Virus record (IMG/VR): IMGVR_UViG_3300010158_000027
Span: 186,001 to 250,000 of that record
DNA: 64,000 bases
Direction: 5' to 3' (one strand)
Shown here piece by piece: positions 3,731-49,477 of the stretch; the first letter of the stretch is position 1, and each line of letters opens with the position of its first letter. Made by a program: the position numbers and the translations under genes. The notes under the pieces are model-generated. The model did not search any database, was not told the origin of the DNA, and worked only from the letters and a program-made list of their open reading frames with translations.

Positions 3731-3792
3731 ATTTAGTTAATTAACCATCATTTTATTATTTTGTAATGTATTTATATATAAATTAAAATATT

Positions 3793-4194
3793 ATGAAAAG
3801 AATAATTAAATTAACAGAATCGGATTTAACAAGAATTGTTAGACGAGTAATTAAAGAACAAGAAAAGGGAGGTAATGATGAGGGAGGTAATGATGAGGGA
3901 GGTAATGATAGAGATTGGTGGTCTTTAGATCTTGCTCCGAAATTAAAACTCGCTGGATTTGTTTCAAAAACAGCCCCTAAATCTAATGTTCCATGTATTA
4001 ATAAGTGTTGTACTTATATGTATAAGGGAAACCATGACACAGGAACTAACGTACTTTTGAATTGTGGTAAAGGAAATACAGGTGGTGTTTGGACAATTGA
4101 AGTTTATAACCAAGGGGGGAAAAATTTGAAAAAATTCTCTGCGGGTCAAGATGGTGCAAGACAAGCGGTTAAATACGCACTTAGTTTAGGATAG
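3793..4194 (+). CDS. Late protein with 'LTESDL..IV.RVIKE' N-terminal leader
   Basis: Leader shared with 43365, 47772 and 49172; TATTTAT at 3769-3775. Confidence 0.7.
   Translation: MKRIIKLTESDLTRIVRRVIKEQEKGGNDEGGNDEGGNDRDWWSLDLAPKLKLAGFVSKTAPKSNVPCINKCCTYMYKGNHDTGTNVLLNCGKGNTGGVWTIEVYNQGGKNLKKFSAGQDGARQAVKYALSLG
3868..3909 (+). repeat. 15-bp tandem repeat (GGAGGTAATGATGAG x2.8) encoding GGNDE
   Basis: Directly visible, immediately after the leader peptide. Confidence 0.9.
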
Positions 4195-4214
4195 TAAATT
4201 TATTTAAAAATTAA

Positions 4215-4248
4215 AAAACCCCTCATCTCTAATACAGGTGGGGGTTTT
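4215..4248 (+). terminator. Intrinsic terminator (AATACAGG family)
   Basis: AAAACCCCTCA...TGGGGGTTTT hairpin with U-tract; near-copy at 49501. Confidence 0.8.
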
Positions 4249-4253
4249 ATTAT

Positions 4254-4282
4254 TTGACAAAACCACTCCATATGTTTATCTT
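4254..4282 (+). promoter_or_regulatory. TTGACA-N17-TATCTT promoter, 6 nt before the primase ATG
   Basis: Exact -35 hexamer with 17-nt spacer. Confidence 0.7.
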
Positions 4283-4288
4283 ATATGT

Positions 4289-5209
4289 ATGGATGATGAA
4301 TCACTATTAATCGATTTAATACTAACAATTTTTGGGGAACCAAAAAGTGTTAATGAATATTCTGGACAAATTTCAGTTGACTGTCCTGTATGTTCATACG
4401 ATATTAAAGGTTTATCGAAAACCGACGGAAAGGGAAATTTAGAAATAAATTACCAAAATCATATTTATAAATGTTGGTCGTGTAGTGAAACTCACGAAAC
4501 TCATGGACATCTAGGGAAGTTGATAGATAAGTTCGGGTCAAAGAAAGATAAAAAAACCTACAAGCTAATCCGACCGGACAAGTTTGAAAAAAAGGAAAAA
4601 GTATTTAAAGAGTTAGAACTACCAAAAGAGTATAAAAAGTTTGACGAAATACATCCCCTTCACATACCAAGAAAAGAGGCATTTAACTACCTTAAAAAAC
4701 GAGGAATAACCCAAGAGATTATTGATAAATATCAAATTGGGATTTGTATTGAAGGTGACTACGCTGGACGAATAATCGTGCCGTCATTTAATAAAAATGG
4801 GGAATTAAACTTTTTTGTTTCAAGATCATGGAATCCCAAATCGAGACTTAAATACAAAAACCCAGAAGCAGCTAAAGACTTTCTTATCTTTAATGAAAGC
4901 TTAATTGATTTTAAAAAGGATATCTACATTGTTGAGGGTGTGTTTGATTCGTTTTTCTTGGAGAATTCGATAGCGCTACTAGGTAAATACATCAATGACA
5001 ATATGTGGGAAAAACTCTACACTAAGGCAAAAAAAGATATTATCATTTGTCTCGATGGGGACGCATATGACGACGCCAAAAAACTATACGATAAACTAAA
5101 CGGGGGTGACTTATATAATCGAGTAAAACTCGTCAAACTACCAAAAGATAAGGATGTTTGTGATTTAAGAGGGGATATCACACCTTACTATATACAAGAA
5201 AAAGATTAA
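4289..5209 (+). CDS. dnaG: DNA primase (zinc finger + TOPRIM)
   Basis: CPVC...CWSC zinc finger; IYIVEGVFD and ICLDGDA TOPRIM motifs; start moved to ATG 4289. Confidence 0.85.
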   Translation: MDDESLLIDLILTIFGEPKSVNEYSGQISVDCPVCSYDIKGLSKTDGKGNLEINYQNHIYKCWSCSETHETHGHLGKLIDKFGSKKDKKTYKLIRPDKFEKKEKVFKELELPKEYKKFDEIHPLHIPRKEAFNYLKKRGITQEIIDKYQIGICIEGDYAGRIIVPSFNKNGELNFFVSRSWNPKSRLKYKNPEAAKDFLIFNESLIDFKKDIYIVEGVFDSFFLENSIALLGKYINDNMWEKLYTKAKKDIIICLDGDAYDDAKKLYDKLNGGDLYNRVKLVKLPKDKDVCDLRGDITPYYIQEKD

Positions 5210-5210
5210 C

Positions 5211-6038: not shown

Positions 6039-6100
6039 ATATGGATATAACAAAATATCTAAAACATTTAACTTTTGTCGATATAAAGTGAAAAAAACGT

Positions 6101-6129
6101 TTGACAAAAAAAAACCAAATGATTATATT
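6101..6129 (+). promoter_or_regulatory. TTGACA-N17-TATATT promoter
   Basis: Exact -35 hexamer, 17-nt spacer, ATG 5 nt downstream. Confidence 0.7.
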
Positions 6130-6134
6130 TTAGT

Positions 6135-6224
6135 ATGACAAATGATTTAACAATTAATTGGTGGTATAATACCACCTTGGATAGTGGTACGGTAAAAATA
6201 AACGTTAATTATAATATATTATGA
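6135..6224 (+). CDS. 29-aa small ORF (MTNDLTINWWYNTT...)
   Basis: Starts right after the promoter; stop overlaps the next ATG (ATGA). Confidence 0.45.
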   Translation: MTNDLTINWWYNTTLDSGTVKINVNYNIL

Positions 6225-6475
6225 AACTAAGAATGGTTAAAACTTATAGTGTTTACCAACTTTATGACACGATGGAAATCAATAAAGAGGATTATCCTGA
6301 ACTTCAAGGGATGTCGGATGAAGATGCGATTTCATATTTGGATGAAAACATGTATGAATTTGAAATTAAAGGTAGTCAGGAAGGTTCGTTGGTAAATGAA
6401 TTTGAATTCAATCAAGAAATGCTTGAGGATGAAATTTTTGATGAAGAGTATGAACTAAAATTAATTAAAGAGTAA
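6221..6475 (+). CDS. Acidic hypothetical protein
   Basis: In operon, coupled start/stop. Confidence 0.6.
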   Translation: MKLRMVKTYSVYQLYDTMEINKEDYPELQGMSDEDAISYLDENMYEFEIKGSQEGSLVNEFEFNQEMLEDEIFDEEYELKLIKE

Positions 6476-6685: not shown

Positions 6686-6693
6686 ATTCCGAT

Positions 6694-7067: not shown

Positions 7068-7068
7068 T

Positions 7069-15198: not shown

Positions 15199-15792
15199 AT
15201 GGCGAGAAGCAGAAAACCAAAAAAGAATCCATCATATATGTTATTCATATATGGAGATTTTAGTGAATCTGAGAACTTAATACAAGAATTGTCAGGTCAG
15301 ATGTTAACGTTAGTTAGTTCACCATTTTTAAAGTACACGTATGGTGAGTTCGGTGTAGTATTTCACTTTAGGAGTGACGAATTATTTTCAGAGTTAAAGG
15401 AATATGTTGACATGGTATTAAATGATATTACTGATCAGTATTTCTTAATAGAAACCACCCCAAGTGGTGTAGATATTAAAATGACGAAAAAATTAAAAAA
15501 AGATTTTTTAAACGTTGATGATGACGCAAAAAAAGAAGAAACAAAAACAGGAGAAATAAATATAGAATTAAAATTAAACGAAAGAAGAGAAGAATTGAGA
15601 AATTTTACGTTTGAGTTCCTAAATCCAGAGGACTTTGGGATTATAGATCAAACGGATAAAATGATTAAAATTGTGGAACCCACAGTAGACGAGATATTAG
15701 AGAAAATTACAGAGGAAGGAATAGAATCATTAACAGAAACAGAAAAAGAAATACTAGACAATTATGGGAAGAGAAAAAATGGAGGGAATTAA
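15199..15792 (+). CDS. Hypothetical protein with DUF6576-like C-terminal motif
   Basis: VDEILEKITEEGIESLTETEKEIL resembles the Bacteroidota DUF6576 helix pair. Confidence 0.55.
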   Translation: MARSRKPKKNPSYMLFIYGDFSESENLIQELSGQMLTLVSSPFLKYTYGEFGVVFHFRSDELFSELKEYVDMVLNDITDQYFLIETTPSGVDIKMTKKLKKDFLNVDDDAKKEETKTGEINIELKLNERREELRNFTFEFLNPEDFGIIDQTDKMIKIVEPTVDEILEKITEEGIESLTETEKEILDNYGKRKNGGN

Positions 15793-15793
15793 A

Positions 15794-16582
15794 ATGTCAA
15801 ATCCTTTAAACCAAGACGAGATTCAAATTTACTTAAAAGACATCAGAAAATTAAAAGTTATGACACCTGAAAGAGAAAAGGTGTTAGCCGTTAAGATGAT
15901 GGGTGAAGATTGTTCAGAAAGAGAAAAGGAACTTGTCCATAAGGAACTATTGGAAGGTAATCTAAGATTTGTTATCACTGTGGCGAAGCAATATCAGAAT
16001 CAAGGGGTGGATTTATCTGATTTGATTGCTGAGGGGAACTTTGGACTTATGAAGGCGATTAAAAATTTTGATTGGAGTAAAAATAACAGGTTCATATCAT
16101 ACGCGGTTTGGTGGATTAAACAATCGATTCTACAGTCTCTGAACGATAATTCAAGAACAATAAGATTACCGGTGAACGTAATACAAGAAATGCAAAAAGA
16201 AAAAAAGGCAAACGAGAAAACTCATAATGATCTTTCAGACAAATTTGCAACACTACCAAAAATAATTGATTTGGATATGCACATAAACGAAGATGGGGAC
16301 ACATTGGTTGACATAATAAAAAACGAAAATGTGGAATCACCCGACGAGATATTCTCAACCAAAGACGCCCTGAAACAAAAGATGATTAATATAATGTCAG
16401 TTTTGGATGAAAGAGAACGAGCAATAGTTGAAGACTACTACGGCATCACTGGAACACCAAGAACATTGGAGGACATTGGAACTGATTTTTCTTTAACAAA
16501 AGAACGTGTAAGACAGATTAAAGAAAAAGCACTTCGTAAGTTAAGAAACGAATGTTCAGATTTATTTGAATATTTAGGATAA
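15794..16582 (+). CDS. Sigma70-family factor, Bacteroidota RpoD-like, with shortened region 3
   Basis: Region 1.2 YLKDI; region 2 NLRFVITVAKQY..DLIAEGNFGL..RFISYAVWWIKQSI; region 4 TLEDIG..FSLTKERVRQIKEKAL. Confidence 0.92.
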   Translation: MSNPLNQDEIQIYLKDIRKLKVMTPEREKVLAVKMMGEDCSEREKELVHKELLEGNLRFVITVAKQYQNQGVDLSDLIAEGNFGLMKAIKNFDWSKNNRFISYAVWWIKQSILQSLNDNSRTIRLPVNVIQEMQKEKKANEKTHNDLSDKFATLPKIIDLDMHINEDGDTLVDIIKNENVESPDEIFSTKDALKQKMINIMSVLDERERAIVEDYYGITGTPRTLEDIGTDFSLTKERVRQIKEKALRKLRNECSDLFEYLG

Positions 16583-18417: not shown

Positions 18418-18982
18418 CCCAATCGGGACATCTGATAAAAAAACAAGAATAATCCTTACCGAAACAAAAAGGGACTATAGAAATTATATCCGATCGTTAA
18501 AGTATCGGTATAATAAAAAAAACCCATATTTACCAAATTATGTTATAACTAAAGAGGGTGGGATTTACAACATCATGCCCCCTGACAATTATTCAAACTA
18601 TATGGATGATGAGGAGATAAATAAAACGTCGATTATTATTTCTTTGGAGAATTTAGGGTGGTTAAAAAAAAATGCACTTTCAGATACGTATGTTAACTGG
18701 ATTGGTGATATTTATAAGGGAAAGGTGTTTGAGAAAAAATGGAGAGACTATTTTTTTTGGGAACCCTATAATGAAGAACAGATTATTGCTTTATCAAAAT
18801 TAATAATTGAACTTTGTGATAAATTTAATATCCCTAAAAAAACTTTAGGGAACAATGTCAAGTATGACGGAGTTGAAAATTTTAAAGGAGTGGTTACCAA
18901 AAGTAACTTCGATTTTATTTATAAAGATACGAACCCATCATTTGACTTTAAACTTTTAAATGAATTATTAGAAAATGACTAA
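18383..18982 (+). CDS. Amidase_2-fold protein lacking the usual Zn-binding histidines
   Basis: Overall pattern (NYVITKEGGIY, SIIISLEN, YNEEQIIAL..LI..LC, KDTNPSFDF), but IILTET and VVTKSN stand where His motifs are expected. Confidence 0.6.
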   Translation: MTENLYVLTDFNPIGTSDKKTRIILTETKRDYRNYIRSLKYRYNKKNPYLPNYVITKEGGIYNIMPPDNYSNYMDDEEINKTSIIISLENLGWLKKNALSDTYVNWIGDIYKGKVFEKKWRDYFFWEPYNEEQIIALSKLIIELCDKFNIPKKTLGNNVKYDGVENFKGVVTKSNFDFIYKDTNPSFDFKLLNELLEND

Positions 18983-19517
18983 CGAATACGACGAATTAAA
19001 ATCTCTTTTAAAGAAAACGAGAATATTAATGGAACAATCCACCATTAATAATATGGCTAAAAGTATTGAGAACAATATAGACTCAGACGTGGAGAAAGCT
19101 GAAATTGATACTGATGACGTTAAAAAAGATAAATCTAAAACGTATCGTATATCTGGTGGACTCTTAACTCTTCATGGTAAAGATAAAAGTGATTTAGAAT
19201 TAACAACAGAGGAAAAAACATGTTATCAGGAAACGATGGATGAGTTCGTTTCCGATGTATCTGATTTATCTGATTTTGGGGTTCTAAAGGTATACCATAA
19301 CGAAGTACAATGGAGTGGTAAGGTTATTGATTTTGATTTGGAGTTTTTCTTTTCTATAGGAGAAAACAATGGGGTGTACGTTAATGGAGACATGATTAAA
19401 TTGGACGATAAATTAACTGAGTTGATTACCAAACTAACCTCTTTTTATGAAAAATTTAAAACAAAGTGGGCTAAAGTGATATCACTAAGAAGAAAATCAA
19501 TAACTACAGAAAACTAG
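18975..19517 (+). CDS. Hypothetical protein
   Basis: In operon. Confidence 0.65.
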   Translation: MTNEYDELKSLLKKTRILMEQSTINNMAKSIENNIDSDVEKAEIDTDDVKKDKSKTYRISGGLLTLHGKDKSDLELTTEEKTCYQETMDEFVSDVSDLSDFGVLKVYHNEVQWSGKVIDFDLEFFFSIGENNGVYVNGDMIKLDDKLTELITKLTSFYEKFKTKWAKVISLRRKSITTEN

Positions 19518-21065: not shown

Positions 21066-22118
21066 ATGGATAGAGAAATATTAAATATAGTAAATAGAGT
21101 GTTATCTGAGGAGATAACGGGTAGAATTAAAAACGTTAATAATAAAATTTTTGAATCTGATGTTATGAAAAAACAAATGTGTTCTGAGTGTGGTAGTAAA
21201 ATGATTGAAGGTGAATGTAATGAGTGTGGATATGGATCCACAGAAATGGGAGAAACGTTACACGGAAAGCAATATAGAATAGATAAAAATAAAAATAATA
21301 GAATAGATAGAGAAGACTTAAAAATGTTGAGATCTAAAAAAACGACTAATAAACATAGTGATGAGTTAGATGAGAACGATTGTGTCGAATGTGATAAGGG
21401 AGCTATGTATGAATTAGATATGAATGAATCCACTGGAGACAAACTTTATTTTTATGAGTCTGAAATGATTGATATGATTGAAACTATCGTCTTAGAAGAG
21501 AAGAAAAAATCAAAAAACAAACCAAAAGGTAAATCTAAAAACCCAATAAAATTAACAAAAGACAATCAAGATAAGTCTAAAAAACAAAATGACGATTATA
21601 TTGAAAGTGTTGTTAAAAAAATGAAAGGATACCTTAAAGATGGTTCTAAAGGTAAGTATGAAATGAATCCTAAACATTTTCCTAAAGGAAACGGAGAATT
21701 GGAAGTGATGGATAAAATGGCTTACATACCATCAAACGCAGTTAAAGATTACACGGATAATTACACCGCAGCCGGGTTGGAGAACATAGATTTTAAAGAT
21801 GGTATAAAACCAGATGAAGAATGGATGGATGACTTGGTGGTTGGTTCTTCTAGAACAGGTAATAATCCTGATTGGGCAAATGCTGTCGAAACCCCGGTTA
21901 ACCAGAAACGAAACCAAATTAGAAAAGATAATTTACTATCAAAATTAAAGGCTAAAGCGTATAATAAAGCTCCACAACCTGTTACTGACGTTACTGGAAG
22001 TAAAACAGATAAAGCATCTAAAGTATTGATTAATTTAGAATCTATTGAAGATAAAAAAATTATTAGTGATATTGAAAAAATGAAAAATTTATTTCAAAAT
22101 ATTAAAAAAACACAATAA
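21066..22118 (+). CDS. Late protein with CxxC ribbons
   Basis: TATTTAT 5 nt before ATG; leader ending VLSEE; CSECG, CNECG, CVEC. Confidence 0.65.
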   Translation: MDREILNIVNRVLSEEITGRIKNVNNKIFESDVMKKQMCSECGSKMIEGECNECGYGSTEMGETLHGKQYRIDKNKNNRIDREDLKMLRSKKTTNKHSDELDENDCVECDKGAMYELDMNESTGDKLYFYESEMIDMIETIVLEEKKKSKNKPKGKSKNPIKLTKDNQDKSKKQNDDYIESVVKKMKGYLKDGSKGKYEMNPKHFPKGNGELEVMDKMAYIPSNAVKDYTDNYTAAGLENIDFKDGIKPDEEWMDDLVVGSSRTGNNPDWANAVETPVNQKRNQIRKDNLLSKLKAKAYNKAPQPVTDVTGSKTDKASKVLINLESIEDKKIISDIEKMKNLFQNIKKTQ

Positions 22119-26704: not shown

Positions 26705-28018
26705 ATGGCTATTAGATTTACAGACATCCTAAGAGATTTGATAATTGAAAACGCGAGATTTCAAATCCTTTTAGACAAATACGCAAAACCTTCAAAGGAG
26801 AAAAAGGCGGCAATATCCTTCAAAACGTTGTTTAAGCTCATCGCGGCTGACCCAACGACAAGAGTACCGAATGGTATCGATCCTGATAATGTGAGTCAAA
26901 AAGACATGGACAAGGTAAAAATTGGAAAGTATGTTCAATGGATACTTAAAAATTATATACAACCTGATGTTGAGTTTGATCCTAATGGTCAGGCGATGGA
27001 GGATTTGTATACGGTTACTTCTGATTTAATGAAGTATGAAAGATTTAAAAATAGAATTCCAGAAGAGTTTAGAGATATTAATAAGTTAACACCGGCGACA
27101 TTATACGATCAAGTTAAAGATTTTTCATTAGAAAAAACTAAGGCAAGTAAAGAAGAAAAGGCTGAAGCGTCAGTTACATACCAATACCCTGGAGCTGAAA
27201 TCGTTTATCGTGGAAGTCAATGGACGGTTGCTAGAATCGAGGATAAAGGTGAGTTAGGTAAGAAGGCGGCGTGTTTTTATGGTGGAAACCATTTGGAGCC
27301 ATCTAAGGGTGAAACAAGATGGTGTACATCATCCCCTGGACTTACATGGTTCGAAAGATACATCGCTAAAGGACCTCTTTATGTGGTTATACCAAATTCT
27401 CCACAAGCGTTTACTAGTAGCATGGATGTTGGACAAAGTTCAGGACTTCCAGCTCTTAGATACCAATTCCATTTCCCTGATAATCAGTATATGGATCCTG
27501 CCGATCATCAAATTGACTTGGTTGAATTCTTAAACAAACAAGAGCCAGGACTTAAAGAGTATTTTAAACCTGAGTTCATGAGTGGACTGACATCTAAAAA
27601 CGGGAAAAAAGTTACAGTTAACTATCCTGGAGATTCAGCATCTAAATTCATCGCTCTATATGGTTTTGATGATTTCTTCGATACTTTACCTGAAAACATT
27701 GAAAGACTTGAGTTCACCAAAAAAGGTGGGGAACCGTTATCATTGGTGATTCCAGATACTATCGGTAAGTTTAAAAGCTTAACTGCGATACACTTAGTTG
27801 GATGTGTTAGTGAAATACCTGAATCGCTTTGTAGTCTTGAAAAATTACAATTCCTTTCATTACCTGAGAATCCAAATATGAAACCATTACCTGCTTGTTT
27901 GGTTAATTTACCAAGATTAACGGTACTTAATATGAAAGGTAGTAATCCTAGCACGTCGATACCTGATGATTTAAGAAAGAAAATGGATTCTGATGATAAT
28001 TTCCATTTATTTGCTTAA
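26705..28018 (+). CDS. Late protein with C-terminal leucine-rich repeats
   Basis: TATTTAT upstream; leader ending LIIE; ETRWCTS motif; LxxLxxLxL repeats (IPESLCSLEKLQFLSL, LPACLVNLPRLTVLNM). Confidence 0.75.
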   Translation: MAIRFTDILRDLIIENARFQILLDKYAKPSKEKKAAISFKTLFKLIAADPTTRVPNGIDPDNVSQKDMDKVKIGKYVQWILKNYIQPDVEFDPNGQAMEDLYTVTSDLMKYERFKNRIPEEFRDINKLTPATLYDQVKDFSLEKTKASKEEKAEASVTYQYPGAEIVYRGSQWTVARIEDKGELGKKAACFYGGNHLEPSKGETRWCTSSPGLTWFERYIAKGPLYVVIPNSPQAFTSSMDVGQSSGLPALRYQFHFPDNQYMDPADHQIDLVEFLNKQEPGLKEYFKPEFMSGLTSKNGKKVTVNYPGDSASKFIALYGFDDFFDTLPENIERLEFTKKGGEPLSLVIPDTIGKFKSLTAIHLVGCVSEIPESLCSLEKLQFLSLPENPNMKPLPACLVNLPRLTVLNMKGSNPSTSIPDDLRKKMDSDDNFHLFA

Positions 28019-31771: not shown

Positions 31772-31861
31772 GATTAAATTTTTTAGTAAGTTTATCGTTA
31801 TGTATATAAATATTTGATAACTATAAAAGAATCATTTGTAAATAGAAACTATTTATAGATT

Positions 31862-33058
31862 ATGGGATTAAAAAATAACGTCAGAATGGTTTTAAGAGAG
31901 CAAGATGAGGAATGGGTGAGCGTTTCACCTGAAGAGTATATGGACTTGTTAAAGTACGTTAACGGTGATGGATCGATTATAAACCGACTACCAGACTATA
32001 AGGGTAAAAAAATTAAAATTGATGGTGATTTAAATTTAAGTTATAATGGTGACATAACAAATATTGATAGTATTGATTACGTTGATGGAAATTTAGATAT
32101 ATCCAAAACGAATATAACTTATTTCGATAAAAATAAAGTTAAAGGTTGGTTCAGATATTATAGTAGTAGAATGGAGCAAATCGAAAATAAAAAGATTTTA
32201 GATAAAAAACTTAAAGTCCTTAATGGGTATCGAGAGAATGGTGAATGGAATGTGGAAGATAATGACGACGAGGTATCAAATGAAACGGAAGCTCTCTTTT
32301 TACATCTTATGGATATCGGATCTGTGGGTGAATATGAAAACGAAGAAGGGGAAACTGTACCTGAGGATAAATATTTTATTTGGACTGATAGTAATCATAA
32401 ATATTATGAATGGCTTGGAGATGAAAATGGCGAAAGCGAATGGTTGGTGATACCGGATGATAAGATAGATGATGTTGCTAGAGAATATCTGCAGGATAGG
32501 ATTGATGAGTCAGGTTATGAAACGTTCAGATCGTATGTTTGGGAAAATAATTTAGACACAGATCGAGTTGACAAATGGTTATATGACTATTATTCGGATG
32601 ATATAACAAATAATCCAGAGGAATTCGACATCCCAAAAACCCTTTCACATCAACAAAAAAACTACGTTAATATTTATACACAAAAAATAGAAAAACTAAA
32701 AATCAGATTAAACGACGAGGAGTTAGACGAAAATCAAGTTGAAGAAATTGAAGATGAAATAACCGACATCGAAGAAATTATTGAGGACATAAACGATTCT
32801 CCAGAGGGGGATTACGACGAGGCGGCTATTGAGGATGAAATAAATGGGCGAGTTAATGATGTTGGTTCTGATTTTTTAAGACACCTGAAGGATATGGGTT
32901 ATGATGATGATTATTTTTTAGAATTCGTTGACATCGATGGTGTTATTACCGATATAATTAATGATGACGGTTATGGTAATATTTTTAATGGTTATGATGG
33001 TAGAGATGATGAATATAAGGTAAACAATAAGTGGTACCACGTAATGAGACAAAATTAA
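31862..33058 (+). CDS. Acidic late protein with short GDLNLS/GNLDIS repeats
   Basis: TATTTAT 5 nt before ATG; leader ending VLRE. Confidence 0.7.
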   Translation: MGLKNNVRMVLREQDEEWVSVSPEEYMDLLKYVNGDGSIINRLPDYKGKKIKIDGDLNLSYNGDITNIDSIDYVDGNLDISKTNITYFDKNKVKGWFRYYSSRMEQIENKKILDKKLKVLNGYRENGEWNVEDNDDEVSNETEALFLHLMDIGSVGEYENEEGETVPEDKYFIWTDSNHKYYEWLGDENGESEWLVIPDDKIDDVAREYLQDRIDESGYETFRSYVWENNLDTDRVDKWLYDYYSDDITNNPEEFDIPKTLSHQQKNYVNIYTQKIEKLKIRLNDEELDENQVEEIEDEITDIEEIIEDINDSPEGDYDEAAIEDEINGRVNDVGSDFLRHLKDMGYDDDYFLEFVDIDGVITDIINDDGYGNIFNGYDGRDDEYKVNNKWYHVMRQN

Positions 33059-33062: not shown

Positions 33063-33491
33063 ATGAAGCAATTAATTAAAAAAATATTAAAAGAGGAATC
33101 GTTAAAGCATAATCTTAAACAACAGATTAAAGATTATGGTTGGGTAGATACTTCGCAAATGGTTAATGGATCAAAAGAGTTGGCAAAATTGGCATTCAAT
33201 AATGATCCAATGGGGTTTCTACATATGTTTGATGATTTGGATATGGTTCAGCGTAAGTTATCAGCAAACTGGACTTTATTTAAACAAGAAAACGGAAATA
33301 ATTTAATGTTGTTGGATAAAAAAATTATTTATATATCTTATGGTGATATTTGGTCATTTTTGACATATGGTTTTGGACTTAGAGATTCCCAAGTTAGGGA
33401 CGTTATAAAGGTATGGTTGGGTGACGTGTACCATTTAAGGGGAATTACTATAGAGGCGGGATTTGATGAATTATTCAGCCATATGCGTTAG
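33063..33491 (+). CDS. Late-type protein, paralogue of 48691-49125
   Basis: MKQLIKKILKEES leader; shared FNNDPM.FLHMF.DLD. Confidence 0.7.
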   Translation: MKQLIKKILKEESLKHNLKQQIKDYGWVDTSQMVNGSKELAKLAFNNDPMGFLHMFDDLDMVQRKLSANWTLFKQENGNNLMLLDKKIIYISYGDIWSFLTYGFGLRDSQVRDVIKVWLGDVYHLRGITIEAGFDELFSHMR

Positions 33492-37544: not shown

Positions 37545-38396
37545 ATGATAGAAACAGGAAAAATAATAAATGGGGATTGTGTTGAAGTGATGAAAACATT
37601 ACCTGAGGGGTCGGTTGATCTAGTTGTGACATCGCCCCCATACGGTGTTGGTATCGCTTACGACACTCATGATGATGATGTTGAGTTTGAAGAGTATAAA
37701 GTATTTGCAAGAAACTGGTTAACAGAAGCATACAACGTACTAAAAGATGATGGGCGTATTGCATTGAACATTCCGTATGAAACCAATCGTCAGAAAAAGG
37801 GGGGACGTATCTTTTTTGTTTCTGAGATGTATCAGATCATGAAAGAGATTGGTTTTGGGTTTTTTGGTATCGTTGATTTGGAGGAACAATCACCACATAG
37901 ATCTAAAACGACAGCTTGGGGATCGTGGATGAGTCCTAGCTCGCCCTATATTTATAACCCGAAGGAGTGTGTAATATTGGCATACAAAAAACTACACATT
38001 AAAAAGGTTAAAGGGGAACCACAATGGAAGGGTACACCAACTGACATTGAGCAGGAGGACGGAACCATAAAAAAGAAAGTTGTGTATGAAGAAACGGATA
38101 AGAAAGAATTTATGGAACTTGTTTTTGGTCAGTGGAATTACTTTGCTGATACTAAATCACTCACCAAGGCGACATTCTCGATGGACATACCGACGAAAGC
38201 AATCAAAATATTGTCCTACAAAAACGATATAATTTTGGACCCATTTGCTGGAAGCGGAACTAGTTTGGTGGCTGCCGAAATCTTAGGGAGACGATGGTTG
38301 GGCATTGAGTTATCACCAAATTATGCTGAAGTGGCAAAAACTCGAGTTGAGTATTTTAAAAATTTACAAACAGTAGTTGAAGAAATCCAAGAGTAA
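37545..38396 (+). CDS. Beta-class amino-methyltransferase (probably N4-cytosine)
   Basis: DLVVTSPPY precedes ILDPFAGSGTS. Confidence 0.88.
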   Translation: MIETGKIINGDCVEVMKTLPEGSVDLVVTSPPYGVGIAYDTHDDDVEFEEYKVFARNWLTEAYNVLKDDGRIALNIPYETNRQKKGGRIFFVSEMYQIMKEIGFGFFGIVDLEEQSPHRSKTTAWGSWMSPSSPYIYNPKECVILAYKKLHIKKVKGEPQWKGTPTDIEQEDGTIKKKVVYEETDKKEFMELVFGQWNYFADTKSLTKATFSMDIPTKAIKILSYKNDIILDPFAGSGTSLVAAEILGRRWLGIELSPNYAEVAKTRVEYFKNLQTVVEEIQE

Positions 38397-38432
38397 TCTT
38401 GGTTTTTTTGTTTTTAATGGTATTTATATGGT

Positions 38433-39851
38433 ATGAAGATAATTATAACTGAAAGCCAATACAAACAACTTATCAAAGAGTCTGGAATAAGAGACATAGG
38501 TAAGATTAGAGATAGATATAAAAAAGCTAAAATATATTTCCATCAAGATTTGGATGGTGTTACAACAGCTATCGCTATGAAAGCTTATTTGGAGAATCAA
38601 GGTATCAAAGTTGTTGATGCTGAAATTATCCAATACGGAGATAAGGAATGGTCGATAAAGAAACCGGACGCTAGTGGTGATGTAATGCCTGTATTGGTGG
38701 ATTTTGCTCACGGTAAACCAATGTTTGTTATTCATACTGATCACCACGATAGCCAAGCTGGTGTTGAATCAGGAACGTCAACAAGTTTTAAAAGTTCAAG
38801 ATCAAACGTTGAAACAATTTCGCAAAGTATATCACCAAAAGAATTATTTCCGAATGATGATATTATATTAATTTCAACTGTGGATTCTGCAAACTACGCA
38901 GTTCAAAACATTAGCCCTGAACAGGTAATGTCTTACTTATTTAAATTTGATAAAGATTCATCATTAAAAAGAAATAAAATGTTAATGGGGTTAGTAACAA
39001 ACAAATTGTTATTAGCATTTAAAAACAAACCAGGGTTCTTAGAAACGTTGGTATTGGATTGTACCCCATCATTATTAAACATATTGTTAAGAATCAAACA
39101 GATTGTCCAAGAAAAAGGATATGCTGACATTCCACAATTAGAAAAGAACAAAGAAGATTATGTATCTTCAATGAAGAGTCATAAAAACGTTGAAATGGTT
39201 GGAAATATTATCAAACAATATGGAGGGGGTTCTATGTTCAAACCGGGTTCATACGACAGATATACCCCATTCAGAAACAATCCTGAAGCTGACTTTATAG
39301 TTCTTGCTTGGCCGATGGGATTGGTACAAGCGTCTTGTAATCCATTTAAAGAAAGTAGAGCATTGAAAGGTGTTAACTTAGGTGAGATTAAAGATGAGGT
39401 ATTAAGTAGATGGGAATCACAATTAAAATCGAAAGAAATCCCCTTATCAACAATTAAATGGGTGTCTGAAAGTGGTATGAATTCTGAGTCAGTTGGATTT
39501 ACATTTAAAGACTTTGTTGCGTTATATGGTGAAAAATTTAAACAAATGGGTAATGGACAGAAATTACTTGATATATTAGGTAATATAATGACTAAACCAT
39601 TTAAATCATTATCACCAAAACAAATAGAGTTAATGGATAAAATAACTATTAATGCTTGGGATTTGATACAATCTAACAGTGGGGGACACAAATGTATTAC
39701 AAACATTTCAGGACTTAATTATTTAGGTCGACCGTCAAGACCTGGTAAAAATGATAAAGCGGAAGGTGAGGATTCTGCATCGGTTAAGTTTACTAAGATG
39801 ATACAAGATCAATTTGTTAAAGTATTACAAGATAAAATAAATAACCAATAA
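38433..39851 (+). CDS. DHH-family phosphoesterase with late leader peptide
   Basis: FHQDLDG, VLVDFA and HTDHH motifs; MKIIITESQYKQLIKE leader; TATTTAT 5 nt upstream. Confidence 0.75.
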   Translation: MKIIITESQYKQLIKESGIRDIGKIRDRYKKAKIYFHQDLDGVTTAIAMKAYLENQGIKVVDAEIIQYGDKEWSIKKPDASGDVMPVLVDFAHGKPMFVIHTDHHDSQAGVESGTSTSFKSSRSNVETISQSISPKELFPNDDIILISTVDSANYAVQNISPEQVMSYLFKFDKDSSLKRNKMLMGLVTNKLLLAFKNKPGFLETLVLDCTPSLLNILLRIKQIVQEKGYADIPQLEKNKEDYVSSMKSHKNVEMVGNIIKQYGGGSMFKPGSYDRYTPFRNNPEADFIVLAWPMGLVQASCNPFKESRALKGVNLGEIKDEVLSRWESQLKSKEIPLSTIKWVSESGMNSESVGFTFKDFVALYGEKFKQMGNGQKLLDILGNIMTKPFKSLSPKQIELMDKITINAWDLIQSNSGGHKCITNISGLNYLGRPSRPGKNDKAEGEDSASVKFTKMIQDQFVKVLQDKINNQ

Positions 39852-42279: not shown

Positions 42280-43155
42280 ACCGACCGAAACAGTCACCAC
42301 AGTTAAAAAAAGTGAATATAACACCTCCCTTTCTTTAAACGTGAAACTAAATTAAGTCATTGGGCCGTGTATGGTCCATTAAAATAAACCACGAAAGTGG
42401 GATAAAGTGAATTTGCGAGTGTTAGTAGATTTGCGTCTTGGGAAACTGAGGTCGAGTACACAAGTGGGATATCATCCGACCTTTAGTATTGAGGGCGACG
42501 CTTTAGGGAAAGTGGTTGGATGGAACGGCAATGTGGATTGTCAGTCTGAGGAGGGAACTCCAATAAGAATAACCCATAGGTATCAAGCGAAAAATATAAA
42601 TTCCAAATATATAATTGCGGATACCATTATAAAAGGGGACTTAAAACCGAAAGGTAAGATAAAGAACGAGTGGTGTCGCTATTATCCCTATCAAAGATCT
42701 ACCAAGATCTTGATATGAAGTAATCTTAAAATATGGAAATGGGGACATTTCACGAGGTAGTCAGGTATTCTGTTTTTCAAAAGAAAATGGATCCTAAACG
42801 GACCGCTACTTTGATTCATCCACAACACACAACTTATTACTAAATTAAGTAAAATTAACTAAAAATAAGCAAAAGTGTTCGTTACGATATGACGGAAGTT
42901 ACCCACCTATTCACTGGCTGTCAGTGGAACGTGATAACCGCAAGTTTGACCGTATTTTTATGAAAAATCTCTAGGACGTCGAAATCCGAATCAGGACGCA
43001 ATCTTGATGAGACAGGAGTAGTAAGAGAGTAGTTGTATCGTCAAGGAGTGATTGGTCTAACCAATCGGTAATGAGTGTTACAGGACAAAATCCTGTGGAT
43101 AAGAGTAGAATACATAATGACTCAAAAGACACTTAATAAAAACTATAATCTCAGG
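42280..43155 (+). ncRNA. Large ornate structured RNA, GOLLD-like candidate
   Basis: ~880 nt without a credible ORF, GC-richer than its flanks; many GNRA-capped stems; long-range GAGAGTAGTT/AACTATAATCTC closing stem; followed by a tRNA. 5' boundary approximate. Confidence 0.7.
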
Positions 43156-43176
43156 TTTTTTTTAATATTCAAATAT

Positions 43177-43249: not shown

Positions 43250-43260
43250 CAATATAATTA

Positions 43261-43289
43261 AACTCTACCCCAAAAAGGTGGGGTTTTTT
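43261..43289 (+). terminator. Intrinsic terminator closing the RNA operon
   Basis: AACTCTACC/GGTGGGGTT stem plus U-tract. Confidence 0.75.
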
Positions 43290-43364
43290 CGTTTATAATC
43301 CTTACTTTTTCAATTAACTATATATTTATATTGGAAGATAAAAAAATTATAAACAAAAAGTATT

Positions 43365-43877
43365 ATGAAAAAAATAGTTAGACTAACAGAATCGGATTTA
43401 ACTGATCTTATTAAAAGAATCGTTGAAGAGTCTGAAAACGATATGAAATCAACAGATGAAGATGGTGATAATGAAATGTCCAAACAAGATGCGATAGATT
43501 TAATTGCCAAATTCCTTGATAAAAAAGTTTTACCAAAACTAGACGACGAGGAAATACGTGATTTGAAACGAAAATCAGCACCAAAACGATCAAGAGGTAT
43601 TCAAGAAGAAGAAATGGATTCTAAAAGTAGAATGTCAAACTTCAAAGAAAAAATGATGATTAGAGGTGGTTTAGGTACTGCGGCCGCTGGGGTAATCGCA
43701 ACACTTAGCGAATTCACAGGTTGGTCTGAATCTGCGATGTTATCAAAAATACATTCATTTATTGAACAGGCAGGAGCTGGTAATTATGCTGGACCTATTT
43801 CAGTAGCTATGGTTGCTGCAGGATTGGCGTTAGCTCTTAAAGGTAAAGACGTACAATACAGAAGAACAAACAAATAA
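43365..43877 (+). CDS. LTESDL-leader late protein with C-terminal hydrophobic segments
   Basis: Leader family; TATTTAT at 43323; two Ala/Gly-rich hydrophobic stretches. Confidence 0.7.
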   Translation: MKKIVRLTESDLTDLIKRIVEESENDMKSTDEDGDNEMSKQDAIDLIAKFLDKKVLPKLDDEEIRDLKRKSAPKRSRGIQEEEMDSKSRMSNFKEKMMIRGGLGTAAAGVIATLSEFTGWSESAMLSKIHSFIEQAGAGNYAGPISVAMVAAGLALALKGKDVQYRRTNK

Positions 43878-43898
43878 TTAAAAAAAATCATATAAAAG

Positions 43899-43926
43899 AA
43901 ATCCCCCCAATACAGGGGGATTTTTT
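43899..43926 (+). terminator. Intrinsic terminator (AATACAGG family)
   Basis: AAATCCCCC/GGGGGATTT stem. Confidence 0.8.
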
Positions 43927-45106: not shown

Positions 45107-45169
45107 TTTCTTTGTTTCTCTTTAAAACAAAGTGGTGGTTGCTCGAATCACAATCCGTGATCGACCCTG

Positions 45170-45198
45170 AAAGGTGAGAGAAATCTCACCTTTTTTTT
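45170..45198 (+). terminator. Intrinsic terminator
   Basis: AAAGGTGAGA-GAAA-TCTCACCTTT plus T8. Confidence 0.85.
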
Positions 45199-45219
45199 GT
45201 TTGTGTGATATTTATTATT

Positions 45220-45591
45220 ATGAATATTAATGAAATCATAAAAAAGGTATTGAAAGAAGAGTTTCTAACGAATTCCTTAATATATGAGGATGAGTTTGGA
45301 TCGGTCGAAGAGGTTAACATTCTAACTGAAGCGGAGTATCAAGGTAGAAATGTGAGTCTTGGTAAAGTCATGCAGGGGGATATTAAAAAGTTTAAGGTTT
45401 ATGTTAAAAACGATAAAGGAAAAGTCGTTAAGGTGAATTTTGGATTTGGTGGTAAATCTGCACATGGGAAACGAATGGTTATTAAAAAAAATAATCCTGA
45501 ACGTAGAAAATCGTTTAGAGCGAGAATGAATTGTGACAGTCCAGGTCCCAGATGGAAACCTAGATATTGGAGCTGTCGGACTTGGAATTAA
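45220..45591 (+). CDS. Late basic protein (VKVNFG..RRKSFRARMNCD..YWSC)
   Basis: TATTTAT 4 nt upstream; leader ending VLKEE. Confidence 0.7.
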   Translation: MNINEIIKKVLKEEFLTNSLIYEDEFGSVEEVNILTEAEYQGRNVSLGKVMQGDIKKFKVYVKNDKGKVVKVNFGFGGKSAHGKRMVIKKNNPERRKSFRARMNCDSPGPRWKPRYWSCRTWN

Positions 45592-45602: not shown

Positions 45603-45902
45603 ATGGGAAAAATTATAGTAACAGAAAAACAACTAGAACGGATGGTTAGAATTCTAAAAGAAAATGATCATGATGGTTCTTATATGGCAAAACAACAATT
45701 GTTTACCATAGCCACATTGGCATATAAGATGTGGGAAATGATGGAAGAGGGTGAGGAACTTGAAGATTGGATGGAAACCAAAATCGCTCAAGCCGAACAA
45801 TCAATAACCGCAGTTGTTAAGTCTCATATGTATGATGACATTGAAGATAGAGCAAAAGGTAGTGGTGGAATCGATCTGGATGGATTGATTATTGGTAATT
45901 AA
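45603..45902 (+). CDS. Late protein with leader ending ILKE
   Basis: MGKIIVTEKQLERMVRILKE. Confidence 0.65.
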   Translation: MGKIIVTEKQLERMVRILKENDHDGSYMAKQQLFTIATLAYKMWEMMEEGEELEDWMETKIAQAEQSITAVVKSHMYDDIEDRAKGSGGIDLDGLIIGN

Positions 45903-45960: not shown

Positions 45961-47289
45961 GTCACTCCACCGAAAAACCCAACCATCTTTAGTGGTTGGG
46001 ATGTAAGGTGTGAAATAATTTAATATTTTTTTAATAAAATTCTTCTTTTTGTTAAAACCAAGATATTTATATAATATGAAGGTTATTAACAAATCATACA
46101 AAGTTAGAATTTACCCTAATAAAGAACAAAAAGTTCTTTTGGAAAAACATTTTGGTTGTATTAGATTCGTATATAATCATTTTTTAAATGTTAGAAATCT
46201 GGAATATAAAGAGAATAAAATCAATCTGAATTATGTTGTAACGGCAAATAAACTATCAGAAATGAAAAATTTAGAAAATTTTAACTTTCTTAATGAGGTT
46301 AATTCACAATCATTACAATGGAGTTTAAAATATTTAGATAACTCATTTAGAAACTTCTTCAGAGGACAAACAAAATTCCCTAATTTTAAGAAAAAATCAA
46401 ATAACCAATCATTTAAAGTACCGGTTAATTCTACATTTAAAATAGAAAAAAATAAAATTATTATCCCTAAATTTAGAGAAGGTATCCATTTTAGAGGTAA
46501 ATTAGAATTAAAAAATTTAATTAAATTTAATTCAATTAATATATCCAAAACCGCATCAGGTAAATATTATGCTTCATTACAAGGGGAATTTAATTATACA
46601 CCTAAAGTTCAAAATGATAATAAAGTAGGTATTGACTTAGGTTTAAAAAAGTTTTTAATAACCGATACTGGTGTTAAATTTGACAATCCTAAATTCCTTA
46701 AAAAACAATTAAAAAAATTAAAATACAAACAAAAACAATTAAGTAAAAAAAATAAAGGTTCTAATAATAGACAAAAACAAAGAATTTTAGTATCTTTAAT
46801 TCATGAAAAAATAAGTAATAAAAGAAATGATTTTTTACATAAGTTAAGTCAAAAAATAGTTAATGAAAATCAAATTATCTGTTTAGAAAACTTATCTGTT
46901 AAAAATATGATAAAAAACCATAAATTAGCTCAATCAATATCAGATGTTAGTTGGTCAAAATTTGTTGATATGTTAAAATATAAATCGGATTGGAATGATA
47001 GACAATTAGTTCAGATAGATAGGTTCTATCCTAGTTCTAAAAGTTGTTCCGCTTGTCATTATATAAACGAAGGATTAACATTAAAAGATGGAGAATGGAC
47101 TTGTCCTTCTTGTAATACACATCACGATAGAGATGTAAATGCTGCTAAAAATATCCTTATACAAGGAATAAACATATTGTCTGGTTCGGGAACCGAGTCG
47201 GACATTAAACAAAAACCTGTGGAGGCGTTGCGGTTACGCAAGTCTAAGAAACAGGAATCCCATTCATCTTTAGTGATTGGGTAGTTCAA
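45961..47289. mobile_element. tnpB-only IS200/IS605-family element
   Basis: Subterminal hairpins CCCAACCA-TCTTTAG-TGGTTGGG (45978-46000) and CCCATTCA-TCTTTAG-TGATTGGG (47259-47281); right end ...GTTCAA; left boundary approximate. Confidence 0.8.
46076..47284 (+). CDS. tnpB: TnpB RNA-guided endonuclease
   Basis: SYKVRIYP HTH; RuvC GIDLG, CLENL and DRDVNAA; CSAC/CPSC zinc finger. Confidence 0.93.
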   Translation: MKVINKSYKVRIYPNKEQKVLLEKHFGCIRFVYNHFLNVRNLEYKENKINLNYVVTANKLSEMKNLENFNFLNEVNSQSLQWSLKYLDNSFRNFFRGQTKFPNFKKKSNNQSFKVPVNSTFKIEKNKIIIPKFREGIHFRGKLELKNLIKFNSINISKTASGKYYASLQGEFNYTPKVQNDNKVGIDLGLKKFLITDTGVKFDNPKFLKKQLKKLKYKQKQLSKKNKGSNNRQKQRILVSLIHEKISNKRNDFLHKLSQKIVNENQIICLENLSVKNMIKNHKLAQSISDVSWSKFVDMLKYKSDWNDRQLVQIDRFYPSSKSCSACHYINEGLTLKDGEWTCPSCNTHHDRDVNAAKNILIQGINILSGSGTESDIKQKPVEALRLRKSKKQESHSSLVIG

Positions 47290-47305
47290 GAGGTAAAAAA
47301 GATTT
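47170..47305 (+). ncRNA. Probable omega/reRNA overlapping the tnpB 3' end, with flank-derived guide
   Basis: GC-richer structured tail in the last codons plus right-end hairpin; typical TnpB arrangement; boundaries approximate. Confidence 0.6.
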
Positions 47306-47311
47306 AATAAT

Positions 47312-47407
47312 ATGGAAGACACATTAGAATTAATGCACAATGAGTTTATAAACTCAGATGAGTATTATGTATTTTTACAAAAATTAGACGAAGAACCAAA
47401 ACTATGA
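47312..47407 (+). CDS. 31-aa small ORF
   Basis: Stop overlaps the next ATG. Confidence 0.45.
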   Translation: MEDTLELMHNEFINSDEYYVFLQKLDEEPKL

Positions 47408-47721
47408 GTTTAGAAAAATCCTTTTCAGATTATATTGATAAGTTTTATCCACAGCTAAATGATTTAAAGTTGGGACACCTTTTTGATGGGGACACCACAA
47501 CATTTTTTTTACAAGATAAAAGTAGAGTAAAATATTTTGTGTTTTTTTATTTTAATAATATTGGGTACGGCAGAGATTTGAATTGCCCAATGGGACTAGT
47601 AGATAATCTTGAAGGGTATTTTGATAATCAAACTGAAGGATTACTTCTTGATTGGTTCATTTCAAACTATGAAATACCTTTAAGACGGTTAGTTCCAACA
47701 GAATTAGTGAAACGTGTATAA
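47404..47721 (+). CDS. Hypothetical protein
   Basis: 105-aa ORF. Confidence 0.55.
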   Translation: MSLEKSFSDYIDKFYPQLNDLKLGHLFDGDTTTFFLQDKSRVKYFVFFYFNNIGYGRDLNCPMGLVDNLEGYFDNQTEGLLLDWFISNYEIPLRRLVPTELVKRV

Positions 47722-47771
47722 AAATATACGTTTTTTTTGTTTATTGGTATATTTATTAATAAAACGATAAT

Positions 47772-48551
47772 ATGAAAAAAATTATAAAACTTACAGAATC
47801 CGATTTAACACGTATTGTTAGACGAGTGATTAAAGAACGAGACGAACGTGACGAAGAGTGGGGACAAACAGATAAAGGTGAAGAGAGACTACAGGATTTA
47901 ATTGTTGCTGGTCGACGTTTCCTTATGTACACAGGAAATGTCGCTTCGACTTTAGATTTTGACACAGTTAACCAAATGAATGAATACGAAATAATGCGTC
48001 ATGTACGTAAAAGAGGAAACGATAAGTTGGCGTCTCGTATTGAAAAGTTATTAAAACAAGAGGGGTTTGAAGATACTACTATGGGTGTTGACAAGACTTA
48101 TCCGACTTTGACTTTACCTAAACATTTAGAAAACATGATCAATAATCTTGTTAGTGATAAAACCGAAGGGTTTAAAGTCAGTGAATATGATAATAAATCT
48201 ATGTGGGATTTAGATTATATTATTGAGGATATTTTGGCTGCTATTGAAGAAAAAATAGGGATAACAAAGTTAAACGAATTGTCTGATGTGGTTCTTGATT
48301 ATATTAACGATTTATTAGATAAATCTGACATTTATCACACAGATGGAGGTGAGTTAGAGGAGGGACACGATGATTTTACCACTCGAAATAGATATGACGA
48401 CTATAGTCAAAAAAATCATAGAAAACTCCCAAAAGGAGCTGTAAAACCAGGGAAATTTGATTTTGAAGGAACATCTTTAAAATTTAAAGGTAACGATGAT
48501 GATGATTTCGATCCGTGGAGTTTGGATGATAGCGATGAGGAATACGTATAA
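47772..48551 (+). CDS. LTESDL-leader acidic late protein
   Basis: Leader family; TATTTAT at 47750. Confidence 0.7.
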   Translation: MKKIIKLTESDLTRIVRRVIKERDERDEEWGQTDKGEERLQDLIVAGRRFLMYTGNVASTLDFDTVNQMNEYEIMRHVRKRGNDKLASRIEKLLKQEGFEDTTMGVDKTYPTLTLPKHLENMINNLVSDKTEGFKVSEYDNKSMWDLDYIIEDILAAIEEKIGITKLNELSDVVLDYINDLLDKSDIYHTDGGELEEGHDDFTTRNRYDDYSQKNHRKLPKGAVKPGKFDFEGTSLKFKGNDDDDFDPWSLDDSDEEYV

Positions 48552-48690
48552 TATGGATTGTTAGATGAGATATTAAAGAAGAGTCGGAACACGTTAAAAA
48601 TCTATATCGATCGTGGACTAATAAAAAAAGTGGAAATATGGTCGATGTTTTAAAATTACAAAAACAATTATCAAAAAAATTTTATACATT

Positions 48691-49125
48691 ATGAAACACA
48701 TTATTAAAAAAATATTAAAAGAGGAATCGTTTAAACAAAGTCTTAAACAAATGGTTAAAGAGTTTGGTTGGGAGACTACTGCAGAAATGGTTAACGGATC
48801 GGAAGAGTTGTCAAAATCCGGATTCAACAATGATCCAATGGAATTCCTACATATGTTTAATGATTTGGATGTCGCTCAAAGTGAGATTAAACCAGATTGG
48901 TATTTAGTTAAACAAGAAAACGGAAAAAATTTAATGGCTTACAATAAAAAAAGGGGACTTCTTTACGTAGTTTATGAAAGTGTTTTGTCATTTTTAACAA
49001 AAGGGTTTAAACTTGAATACGATGAAATACTGGCACTTATAAAGAAATGGGCGGATAAGTCATACAATTTAAAGGGGTTAGAAACACATGGGGTTTACCA
49101 ATATGCTATTGAGCAGTTGGGTTAA
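48691..49125 (+). CDS. Paralogue of 33063-33491
   Basis: DNA- and protein-level similarity over the N-terminal half. Confidence 0.7.
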   Translation: MKHIIKKILKEESFKQSLKQMVKEFGWETTAEMVNGSEELSKSGFNNDPMEFLHMFNDLDVAQSEIKPDWYLVKQENGKNLMAYNKKRGLLYVVYESVLSFLTKGFKLEYDEILALIKKWADKSYNLKGLETHGVYQYAIEQLG

Positions 49126-49171
49126 TCTTACAAAATTATAATTAATAATAAATAAAATAAAAAGTAAAATT

Positions 49172-49477
49172 ATGAAAAAGACAGTAAGACTAACAGAAAG
49201 CGATTTAACACGTATCGTTAAACGTGTTGTTATTGAACAAAACGAAGAGGATAGAATGGAAGGTGAAGGTATGTCCATCACAGTAGAAGATATATTTGAG
49301 GGGGTTAGAGATGCTCTTGACCAACTGGGAGGATATCGAGATTCGATGAAAACAGAAGCTATGAAATTGGCAAGAAATATTATGTCTAGTATGCAAGACG
49401 ACTTGGCTTACGTTACTGAAAATTATGAGGAACAACTTTATGATATACTTGGTGAAGAAGAAGAAGATGAGTATTAA
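49172..49477 (+). CDS. LTESDL-leader acidic protein
   Basis: Leader family. Confidence 0.7.
   Translation: MKKTVRLTESDLTRIVKRVVIEQNEEDRMEGEGMSITVEDIFEGVRDALDQLGGYRDSMKTEAMKLARNIMSSMQDDLAYVTENYEEQLYDILGEEEEDEY

Follow-up and report, generated by a model that had tools for sequence, protein, structure and literature searches.

The internal proteins of phage T4 are made with propeptides of 10-19 residues that target them to the prohead core and are later removed; the head protease gp21 cleaves after the Glu of L/I-x-E, and processing of the capsid-targeting sequence (CTS) of IPIII is governed by its residues 8 and 10 (PMC9026906). In the jumbo phages phiKZ, 201phi2-1 and SPN3US many head and ejection proteins lose N-terminal propeptides at x-x-E; these propeptides are thought to be CTS-like, and identical N-termini have been noted on diverged paralogues (PMC5694885). 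The subject here is a family of N-terminal leaders encoded in a 64,000-nucleotide stretch of DNA (the window: bases 186001-250000 of the genome of a distant T4-like jumbo phage, uncultured and from freshwater, represented by one 281,269-bp IMG/VR virus contig). The leaders are attached to bodies that have nothing else in common. On balance they would seem to be propeptides that target the capsid as those of the T4 internal proteins do, only longer and much more strongly conserved, a reading in which we have slightly better than even confidence.

The leader designated class A comprises 22 residues, MKRIIRLTESDLTRIVRRVIKE(Q), and stands at the head of unrelated bodies. Four genes of the window carry it ("promoter motif" stands for the late-type octamer TATTTAT(A/T), taken up below; an arrow follows the Glu that ends a leader or site):

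3769..3776, + strand: late-type promoter-like motif TATTTATA, 24 nt 5' of the ATG at 3793

3793..4194, + strand: class A leader gene, 133 aa, profile E 8.8e-19

43365..43877, + strand: class A leader gene, 170 aa; the leader is diverged and ends I-V-E-E↓S, the body is acidic; promoter motif at 43323-43330, terminator-like hairpins at 43260-43286 and 43896-43926

47772..48551, + strand: class A leader gene, 259 aa; promoter motif at 47750-47757

49172..49477, + strand: class A leader gene, 101 aa, leader ending V-V-I-E↓Q, located behind 48691-49125; no promoter motif of its own, terminator-like hairpin at 49506-49529

A prior sequence-only reading had singled out these four open reading frames (ORFs) by their common start. 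All four begin MK+I..LTESDLT(R/D)(I/L)(V/I)+R(V/I)(I/V).E, and the resemblance is borne out by a leader profile run against the genome, with which they score at E 1e-16 to 1e-18. The profile search finds nine class A copies in all; the five outside the window start at genome positions 142, 2973, 6160, 12934 and 58376. DNA identity among the eight strict copies of the genome averages 75% (61-92%) over the first 66 nt, against 39% upstream and ~30% downstream, and the class A bodies of the genome have no BLASTP similarity to one another: the earlier claims, that conservation of the DNA is confined to the first ~65 bp and that the bodies are unrelated, were thus correct. In the ORF at 3793, for example, codons 1-22 (3793-3858) end V-I-K-E↓Q, the body opens with GGNDE repeats, and neither Pfam nor PHROGs nor NCBIfam yields a match.

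What exactly is conserved? Among 223 non-redundant class A leaders positions 1-20 are near-invariant, with I or V at position 20; position 21 is free (K94 R34 N28 S24 M12 Q11), position 22 is E in 218 of the 223, position 23 is mostly Q, N, E or S, and past position 23 conservation is gone, leaving a mild enrichment of Glu, Asp and Gln in the residues that come after the leader. At the level of codons (92 non-redundant copies), positions 1 and 2 are constant, and variation is seen at position 3 and among the synonymous codons of Leu, Arg and Ser. Synonymous sites vary freely and the peptide is therefore the functional unit: selection, judged by this codon usage, is on the leader peptide and not on DNA or mRNA. 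By hydrophobic moment (0.74, in the top 1% of shuffles) residues 8-22 would form a basic amphipathic helix with a net charge of +4.

The class A leader is N-terminal in 111 of 112 unique local cases and internal in one. Proteins with two copies are real and rare (internal copies make up ~1% of the local set): in the metagenome proteins P0142, P0146, P0152, P0157, P0163 and others, and at residue 267 of the L058 ORF, a second copy is found internally, without the Met and the MKRIIR part and still ending h-x-E (h being a hydrophobic residue). Such proteins head the search of cluster representatives described below because the scores of both copies add.

Class A is one of four classes into which the N-termini were sorted. 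Class B reads MKIIITESQYKxLIxE, with a longer form xxIITEEEKxRILxMH...LxE; class C, ..EINRMKxL...ISE; class D, MKxLIKKILKE. Every class ends h-x-E, exactly where conservation stops. Counted over the whole genome, the leader genes run well beyond those initially listed: nine of class A and ~25 of the related classes make ~35, about a tenth of the genome. In 18 genes the motif [IL]TE[SQEDN] falls among the first 10 residues (background 0.0002 per site), and [ILV]xEQ occurs at residues 16-30 of 19, ~10 times background. The genes are unevenly distributed: 21 of the 68 genes lying between 265 kb and 27 kb (over the contig ends) have leaders, as against 14 of 273 elsewhere, and window 31-50 kb contains a second leader-gene island.

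The window's candidates for classes B, C and D, among them eight "loose" leaders of the sequence-only reading, are as follows:

18975..19517, + strand: class C-like leader (..LKKTRILME↓Q), a weak candidate, 180 aa; promoter motif 59 nt upstream

21066..22118, + strand: ORF with VLSE↓E; promoter motif present

26705..28018, + strand: ORF with LIIE↓N; weak leucine-rich repeat (LRR) match; promoter motif present

31862..33058, + strand: short D-like leader (..RMVLRE↓Q), 398 aa; promoter motif at 31850-31857

33063..33491, + strand: class D leader (MKQLIKKILKE↓ES), 142 aa

38433..39851, + strand: class B leader (MKIIITESQYKQLIKE↓S), 472 aa; the protein is DHH/RecJ-like by weak family matches; promoter motif at 38421-38428, hairpin at 38387-38402

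45220..45591, + strand: class D-like leader (..IIKKVLKE↓E); the protein is small, conserved and very basic; promoter motif at 45209-45216, hairpin at 45169-45194

45603..45902, + strand: class B-like leader (MGKIIVTEKQLERMVRILKE↓N), 99 aa; orthologues have variant leaders of the same class

48691..49125, + strand: class D leader, 144 aa; paralogue of 33063

Homologues of several of these proteins have other leaders in place. The family of 33063 and 48691 has class D leaders in the window phage and class B leaders in other phages (33063 is a full-length paralogue of 48691 and of the genes at genome 276823 and 278038, and not a leader-only match). The protein at 38433 has a 16-residue class B leader where its orthologues have just MKKILKE↓T before the same body, and an orthologue of 31862 has ..LIKKIIKE↓E, a D-type end, ahead of the same body. 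The orthologues of 45220 have class B or A-like leaders and are 73-79% identical overall, 77-93% in BLAST alignments of the body. The class A leader of L035 and the class B2 leader of L028 are followed by a common body from GGPL on; L073 (..RVIKEN↓EEEWI, class A) and L045 (..RQYLKEN↓EDEWI, class B2) have homologous bodies, and the divergence between them ends exactly at h-x-E. Since homologous bodies are found with different leaders, the classes would seem to be a single type of tag in several forms that can replace one another. In this way 38433, 45220, 45603, 31862 and the pair 33063/48691 are retained from the list of loose leaders; 26705 and 21066 are not, no homologue support having been found for these two beyond a promoter motif and a generic [ILV]xE (background 0.015 per position).

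The 45220 family has a second conserved site, L-(T/N)-E↓AEYQGR, ~35-40 residues in, after which comes a very basic and highly conserved body; because of this second L-(T/N)-E↓A site the family may lose a longer propeptide.

How leaders are exchanged is another matter. The sequence-only reading had proposed recombination within the conserved leader, and this part of it is not borne out: conservation is at the level of the peptide, the exact DNA runs common to leader copies are mostly 7-19 nt (one pair shares 39 nt), and runs so short lend no support to homologous recombination inside the leader as the route of exchange. The swaps that are observed replace the leader itself.

And what do the leaders carry? 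Most bodies are small ORFans that belong to no family; their isoelectric points (pI) range from 4 to 9.6 and many are acidic. A phage lysozyme (PF00959) with a class B leader is encoded at genome 254488; of the peptidoglycan-binding proteins, one at genome 21257 has a class C leader and one in the related genome G001 a class A leader; an Ig-like CarboxypepD_reg domain begins right after ..IVEQ↓SGG. The lysozyme and peptidoglycan-binding bodies are plausible as ejected proteins. The labels "LRR" and "DHH" given to two bodies by the sequence-only reading are weak, the Pfam matches falling below curated cut-offs, and the DHH-like protein (38433) has no sequence relative in the PDB. An AlphaFold2 model of the 45220 cargo family (mean predicted local distance difference test score, pLDDT, 43) is too poor for a fold search; for three cargo bodies the ESM Atlas returned unannotated phage-protein clusters or chance-level matches only.

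The head module of the phage, at genome 63-74 kb, comprises the large terminase, the portal, a Peptidase_S77 protease, a very acidic scaffold-like protein and a gp23-type capsid protein. The prohead protease, which the sequence-only reading had left to be located, is of the S77 (gp21) family and is encoded at genome 69583-70293 (E 6.9e-24); S77 proteases are also present in 3/3 other near-complete leader-bearing genomes and in 4/7 fragments. What would this enzyme cleave? The capsid protein's ..HLINE↓ASS aligns with ..FLTE↓AEIGG of RB69 gp23 and ..IVSE↓AN of phage immuto, the Glu-Ala being invariant; its N-terminal 60 residues are 85-100% invariant among relatives, and the maturation site is conserved. 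The protease has an h-x-E site of its own 8-10 residues N-terminal to the conserved core (VIKE↓S, MLEE↓N, FLKE↓Q, FIME↓S) and an L-x-E site ~30 residues from its C-terminus, both within otherwise variable stretches. Because these sites of the capsid protein and of the protease are conserved, the phage protease very probably keeps a T4-like L/I/V-x-E specificity, and it is with this motif that each of the leader classes closes. (I/L)xE sites are also abundant in the scaffold-like proteins, whose genes start at genome 67754 and at 70666 (70666-72153); the scaffold-like protein has a pI of 4.3.

Some further features of this region, all outside the window, may be recorded here. In the capsid protein (genome 72180-73982) alignment columns 120-370 correspond to an insert of ~250 aa, which differs strongly from one relative to another, the propeptide and core being conserved. 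The N-terminal half of the portal ORF (genome 64957-67734) is HNH-endonuclease-like, and a large homing endonuclease gene (genome 74070-75845) lies directly 3' of the capsid gene. Behind the head module, at genome 75896-81747, are four genes whose products have hydrophobic, signal-peptide-like N-termini, one of them 1,330 aa long.

The promoter motif is common to the leader genes and the genes of head and tail. TATTTAT(A/T) is the top enriched octamer upstream of the genes of this genome (58 observed vs 4.7 expected, 12-fold). It precedes the genes for tail sheath, tube, baseplate wedge, head-tail adaptor, tail fibre, protease and scaffold-like protein, and is absent from replication blocks. 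It is found upstream of 22/34 leader genes and of 64/307 others (odds ratio 7, p 3e-7), and the leader genes that do not have it come immediately after another leader gene. Among relatives, 57/92 class A genes have it vs 7 in shuffled upstream sequence. The sequence-only reading saw TATTTAT before most of the 12 ORFs it listed, and TATTTAT(A/T) does lie within 60 nt upstream of 8 of these. The leader-gene cassettes are accordingly predicted to be expressed late. Metatranscriptome contigs have low coverage.

At window 15764-16582 (+ strand) lies the gene of a full sigma-70 family factor (regions 1.2, 2 and 4 are all present), a candidate reader of TATTTAT(A/T). Window 31-50.5 kb has an excess of terminator-like hairpins (20 vs 6.8 expected), which flank several cassettes. 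One stands directly upstream of 6/35 leader genes; at that count a composite terminator-promoter cassette was rejected as a general feature of leader genes. The hairpin at 43260-43286 comes after a full-length GOLLD RNA (RF02032, 277 bits, E 5e-78) at window 42753-43157 (+ strand), just 5' of the leader gene at 43365. The word depth of the GOLLD contig in two lake metatranscriptomes is ~100 and up to ~9,000, that of the neighbouring protein genes <=20.

Nor is window 3769-49477 the single regulon block for which the sequence-only reading had taken it: primase, SbcCD, the sigma factor, TnpB and the GOLLD RNA lie within it as well. The TnpB/IS605 OrfB-type gene (46076-47284, + strand; OrfB_IS605, Cas12f1-like TNB and helix-turn-helix domains) lies within the leader-gene island. 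A tRNA gene at window 51612-51685 (+ strand) scores 41 bits with Rfam; ARAGORN leaves its anticodon undetermined, with two bases.

How widespread is the leader? The genome itself (CheckV completeness 96%; ~31% G+C; most genes on the + strand) yields 9 class A and 13 class B copies with the profiles, which served as the positive control. Related leader-bearing genomes of 230-296 kb, with capsid proteins 77% identical to that of the window phage, have 6-14 class A and 7-17 class B genes each; the related contigs come from lake metagenomes. In the 296-kb one of these phages, >12 leader genes of classes A, B and D are packed into 15 kb (locus L110, G001:105001-125000), most with a TATTTAT(A/T) motif of their own. 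IMG/VR contains 290 TESDLTRI loci. A word-based search gathered >456 metagenome proteins (73-233 aa) with a near-identical leader and wholly different bodies, and an exhaustive profile search of 1.84 billion cluster representatives gathered 7,195 at E<=0.001 and 629 at E<=1e-10.

Judged by the capsid protein, the cultured phages closest to the window phage are Flavobacterium phage immuto and Microcystis phage Mel-JY01, at an identity of just 42-43%. Under the working positive control, the class A and B profiles find no match in immuto, Mel-JY01, LR756508, RM378 or RB69 (in RB69 they are empty even at E<=1; by this search the leader has no sequence homology to the T-even CTS), and tblastn of the leader against 50,697 phage records finds none. 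Neither the leader nor most of the bodies is represented by a family in Pfam, PHROGs or NCBIfam, and the string "LTESDL" occurs in no paper of the literature library searched. Of 185,579 prokaryote species genomes just one gives a match, on a 3.3-kb contig that had been assigned to the bin of a Bacteroidetes metagenome-assembled genome; a Bacteroidota host is therefore likely, on the strength of that binning.

How, then, might the leader work? In the module a short hydrophobic strand (MKRIIR) is followed by a capping box (LTESD), and this by a basic amphipathic helix (LTRIVRRVIKE); behind the module come a linker, often acidic or glycine-rich, and the unrelated body. During prohead assembly the basic helix would serve to dock the protein, either on the scaffold core, which is very acidic, or on the inner shell; the S77 prohead protease would then cleave at I-x-E, behind Glu22, with a possible further cut behind the Glu of L-T-E, residue 9; the freed body would stay inside the head and exit with the DNA at the next infection. 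The protease, the h-x-E ends, the promoter motif and the modularity are circumstantial evidence for this capsid-targeting scheme, and to that extent the sequence-only reading survives, shorn of its recombining leaders. A number of observations weigh against it. Co-occurrence with S77 is weak evidence, because every T4-like phage, leader-less relatives included, has S77; co-folding of the protease with leader residues 1-40 scored 0.00 (per the tool, no evidence either way); neither the phage records nor the profile searches of isolates turned up a cultured phage with the leader; a few proteins retain a conserved internal second copy; and for some bodies (Ig-like, LRR-like, peptidoglycan-binding) exposure on the particle surface would be suitable too. 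Twenty near-invariant residues across thousands of proteins exceed the apparent need of a T4-style signal; this near-invariance suggests a more specific partner. One can go further and imagine, in place of a simple T4-style propeptide, a dedicated, high-specificity sorting code of an uncultured freshwater jumbo-phage clade, with one receptor, a 20-residue address, internal copies that mark the units of polyproteins, 7,195 clusters as the catalogue of all that it loads and delivers, and a destination that is perhaps not the head interior; we regard this as rather improbable.

The near-invariance of the same 20 residues would fit a specific protein-protein interface, as in a docking handle that is never cleaved: the conserved helix would stay and attach domains on or in the virion, as a decoration of capsid or neck, for instance. 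Ig-like (CarboxypepD_reg), LRR-like and peptidoglycan-binding bodies are typical of displayed adhesins, the internal helix copies without MKRIIR are conserved, and a late-type promoter motif is equally in keeping with such a role. Still, this, the chief rival, is unlikely: it does not account for otherwise dissimilar classes having only the terminal h-x-E in common, at the point where conservation ends and at the boundaries of swaps, nor for a variable residue exactly between the conserved I and E, and most bodies are small ORFans and not adhesin-like. Or the tag might sort proteins to a destination outside the virion, some partner of phage or host such as a late lysis or envelope complex or a chaperone, its likeness to a protease motif being coincidental. 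Lysozyme and peptidoglycan-binding bodies could serve lysis, the link to the head rests on the logic of a motif, and the co-folding, no evidence either way by the tool's own statement, gave no support for the head. Against this, the leader is not hydrophobic and so is not a Sec or SAR-type signal, its single match among prokaryote genomes means that it is not a host export signal, and the h-x-E boundary is left unexplained; the proposal seems to us quite improbable. Pediocin-type leaders look similar, and a double-glycine bacteriocin or RiPP (ribosomally synthesized and post-translationally modified peptide) leader was considered and rejected: the leader ends K-E-Q and not GG/GA, its occurrence in prokaryotes is confined to that same one genome, and NCBIfam has no leader model for it. 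That the first 65 bp are a nucleic-acid element (a recombination site, or a translation-initiation or mRNA element) with an incidental peptide is scarcely tenable. DNA identity within the genome is indeed far higher in the leader than in its flanks, one pair of copies has its 39-nt exact run, and some cassettes have an upstream composite of terminator and promoter like the PeSL elements of T4 (PMC4122927); the idea is largely refuted by synonymous codons that vary under fixed amino acids, with the shortness of the other exact runs and the scarcity of upstream hairpins telling in the same direction.

If the leader is a packaging tag, the repertoire of proteins injected by an abundant clade of lake phages becomes readable from sequence alone. 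The ~35 genes of this phage and thousands of metagenome protein families would then be prime candidates for counter-defence and host take-over, the proteins that jumbo phages co-deliver could be studied without cultivation, and a defined peptide would be at hand for loading foreign proteins into capsids. It would also follow that the capsid-targeting principle of T4 operates, at a great distance from the T-even phages, on a larger scale and in a stricter form. An uncleaved leader would still be an unusually conserved and widespread phage protein module, of which no prior description was found.

Comparison with the known systems brings out where the leader stands. Encapsulin cargo-loading peptides resemble it in that a short conserved peptide brings diverse cargo to an HK97-fold shell, by analogy only: they are C-terminal, ~10 residues long and uncleaved, and they serve cellular compartments. 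The phiKZ-type motif is S/A/G-x-E with a small P3, whereas P3 of the leader is I, V or L, which sets it apart from that type; phiKZ-type propeptides, moreover, are mostly >100 residues long, are not common to unrelated proteins and belong to a different phage lineage, and the window phage has a gp21-type protease and a gp23-type capsid protein. PeSL cassettes and the shuffling of internal-protein loci in T4-like phages likewise involve small cargo genes in plastic islands, with their own promoters and some upstream terminator hairpins. The PeSL promoter, however, is of the early sigma-70 type while leader genes have the late-type TATTTAT(A/T), and the composite element is found at just the six leader genes counted above. 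The closest likeness is to the T4 CTS of IPI, IPII, IPIII and Alt, removed by gp21: an N-terminal tag on unrelated proteins, an L/I-x-E end, a gp21-family protease in the genome and apparently late expression (predicted here). The cargo sets of T4 internal proteins likewise vary between related phages and lie in plastic regions (PMC9026906, PMC4122927). Unlike T4 internal proteins, leader bodies are often acidic and not only basic. The T4 CTS has 10-19 residues and tolerates substitution, whereas the leader has 22 and is near-invariant over 20 positions in 7,195 clusters; and where T4 has a handful of CTS genes, the leader phages have 9-14 class A and 13-17 class B genes per near-complete genome.

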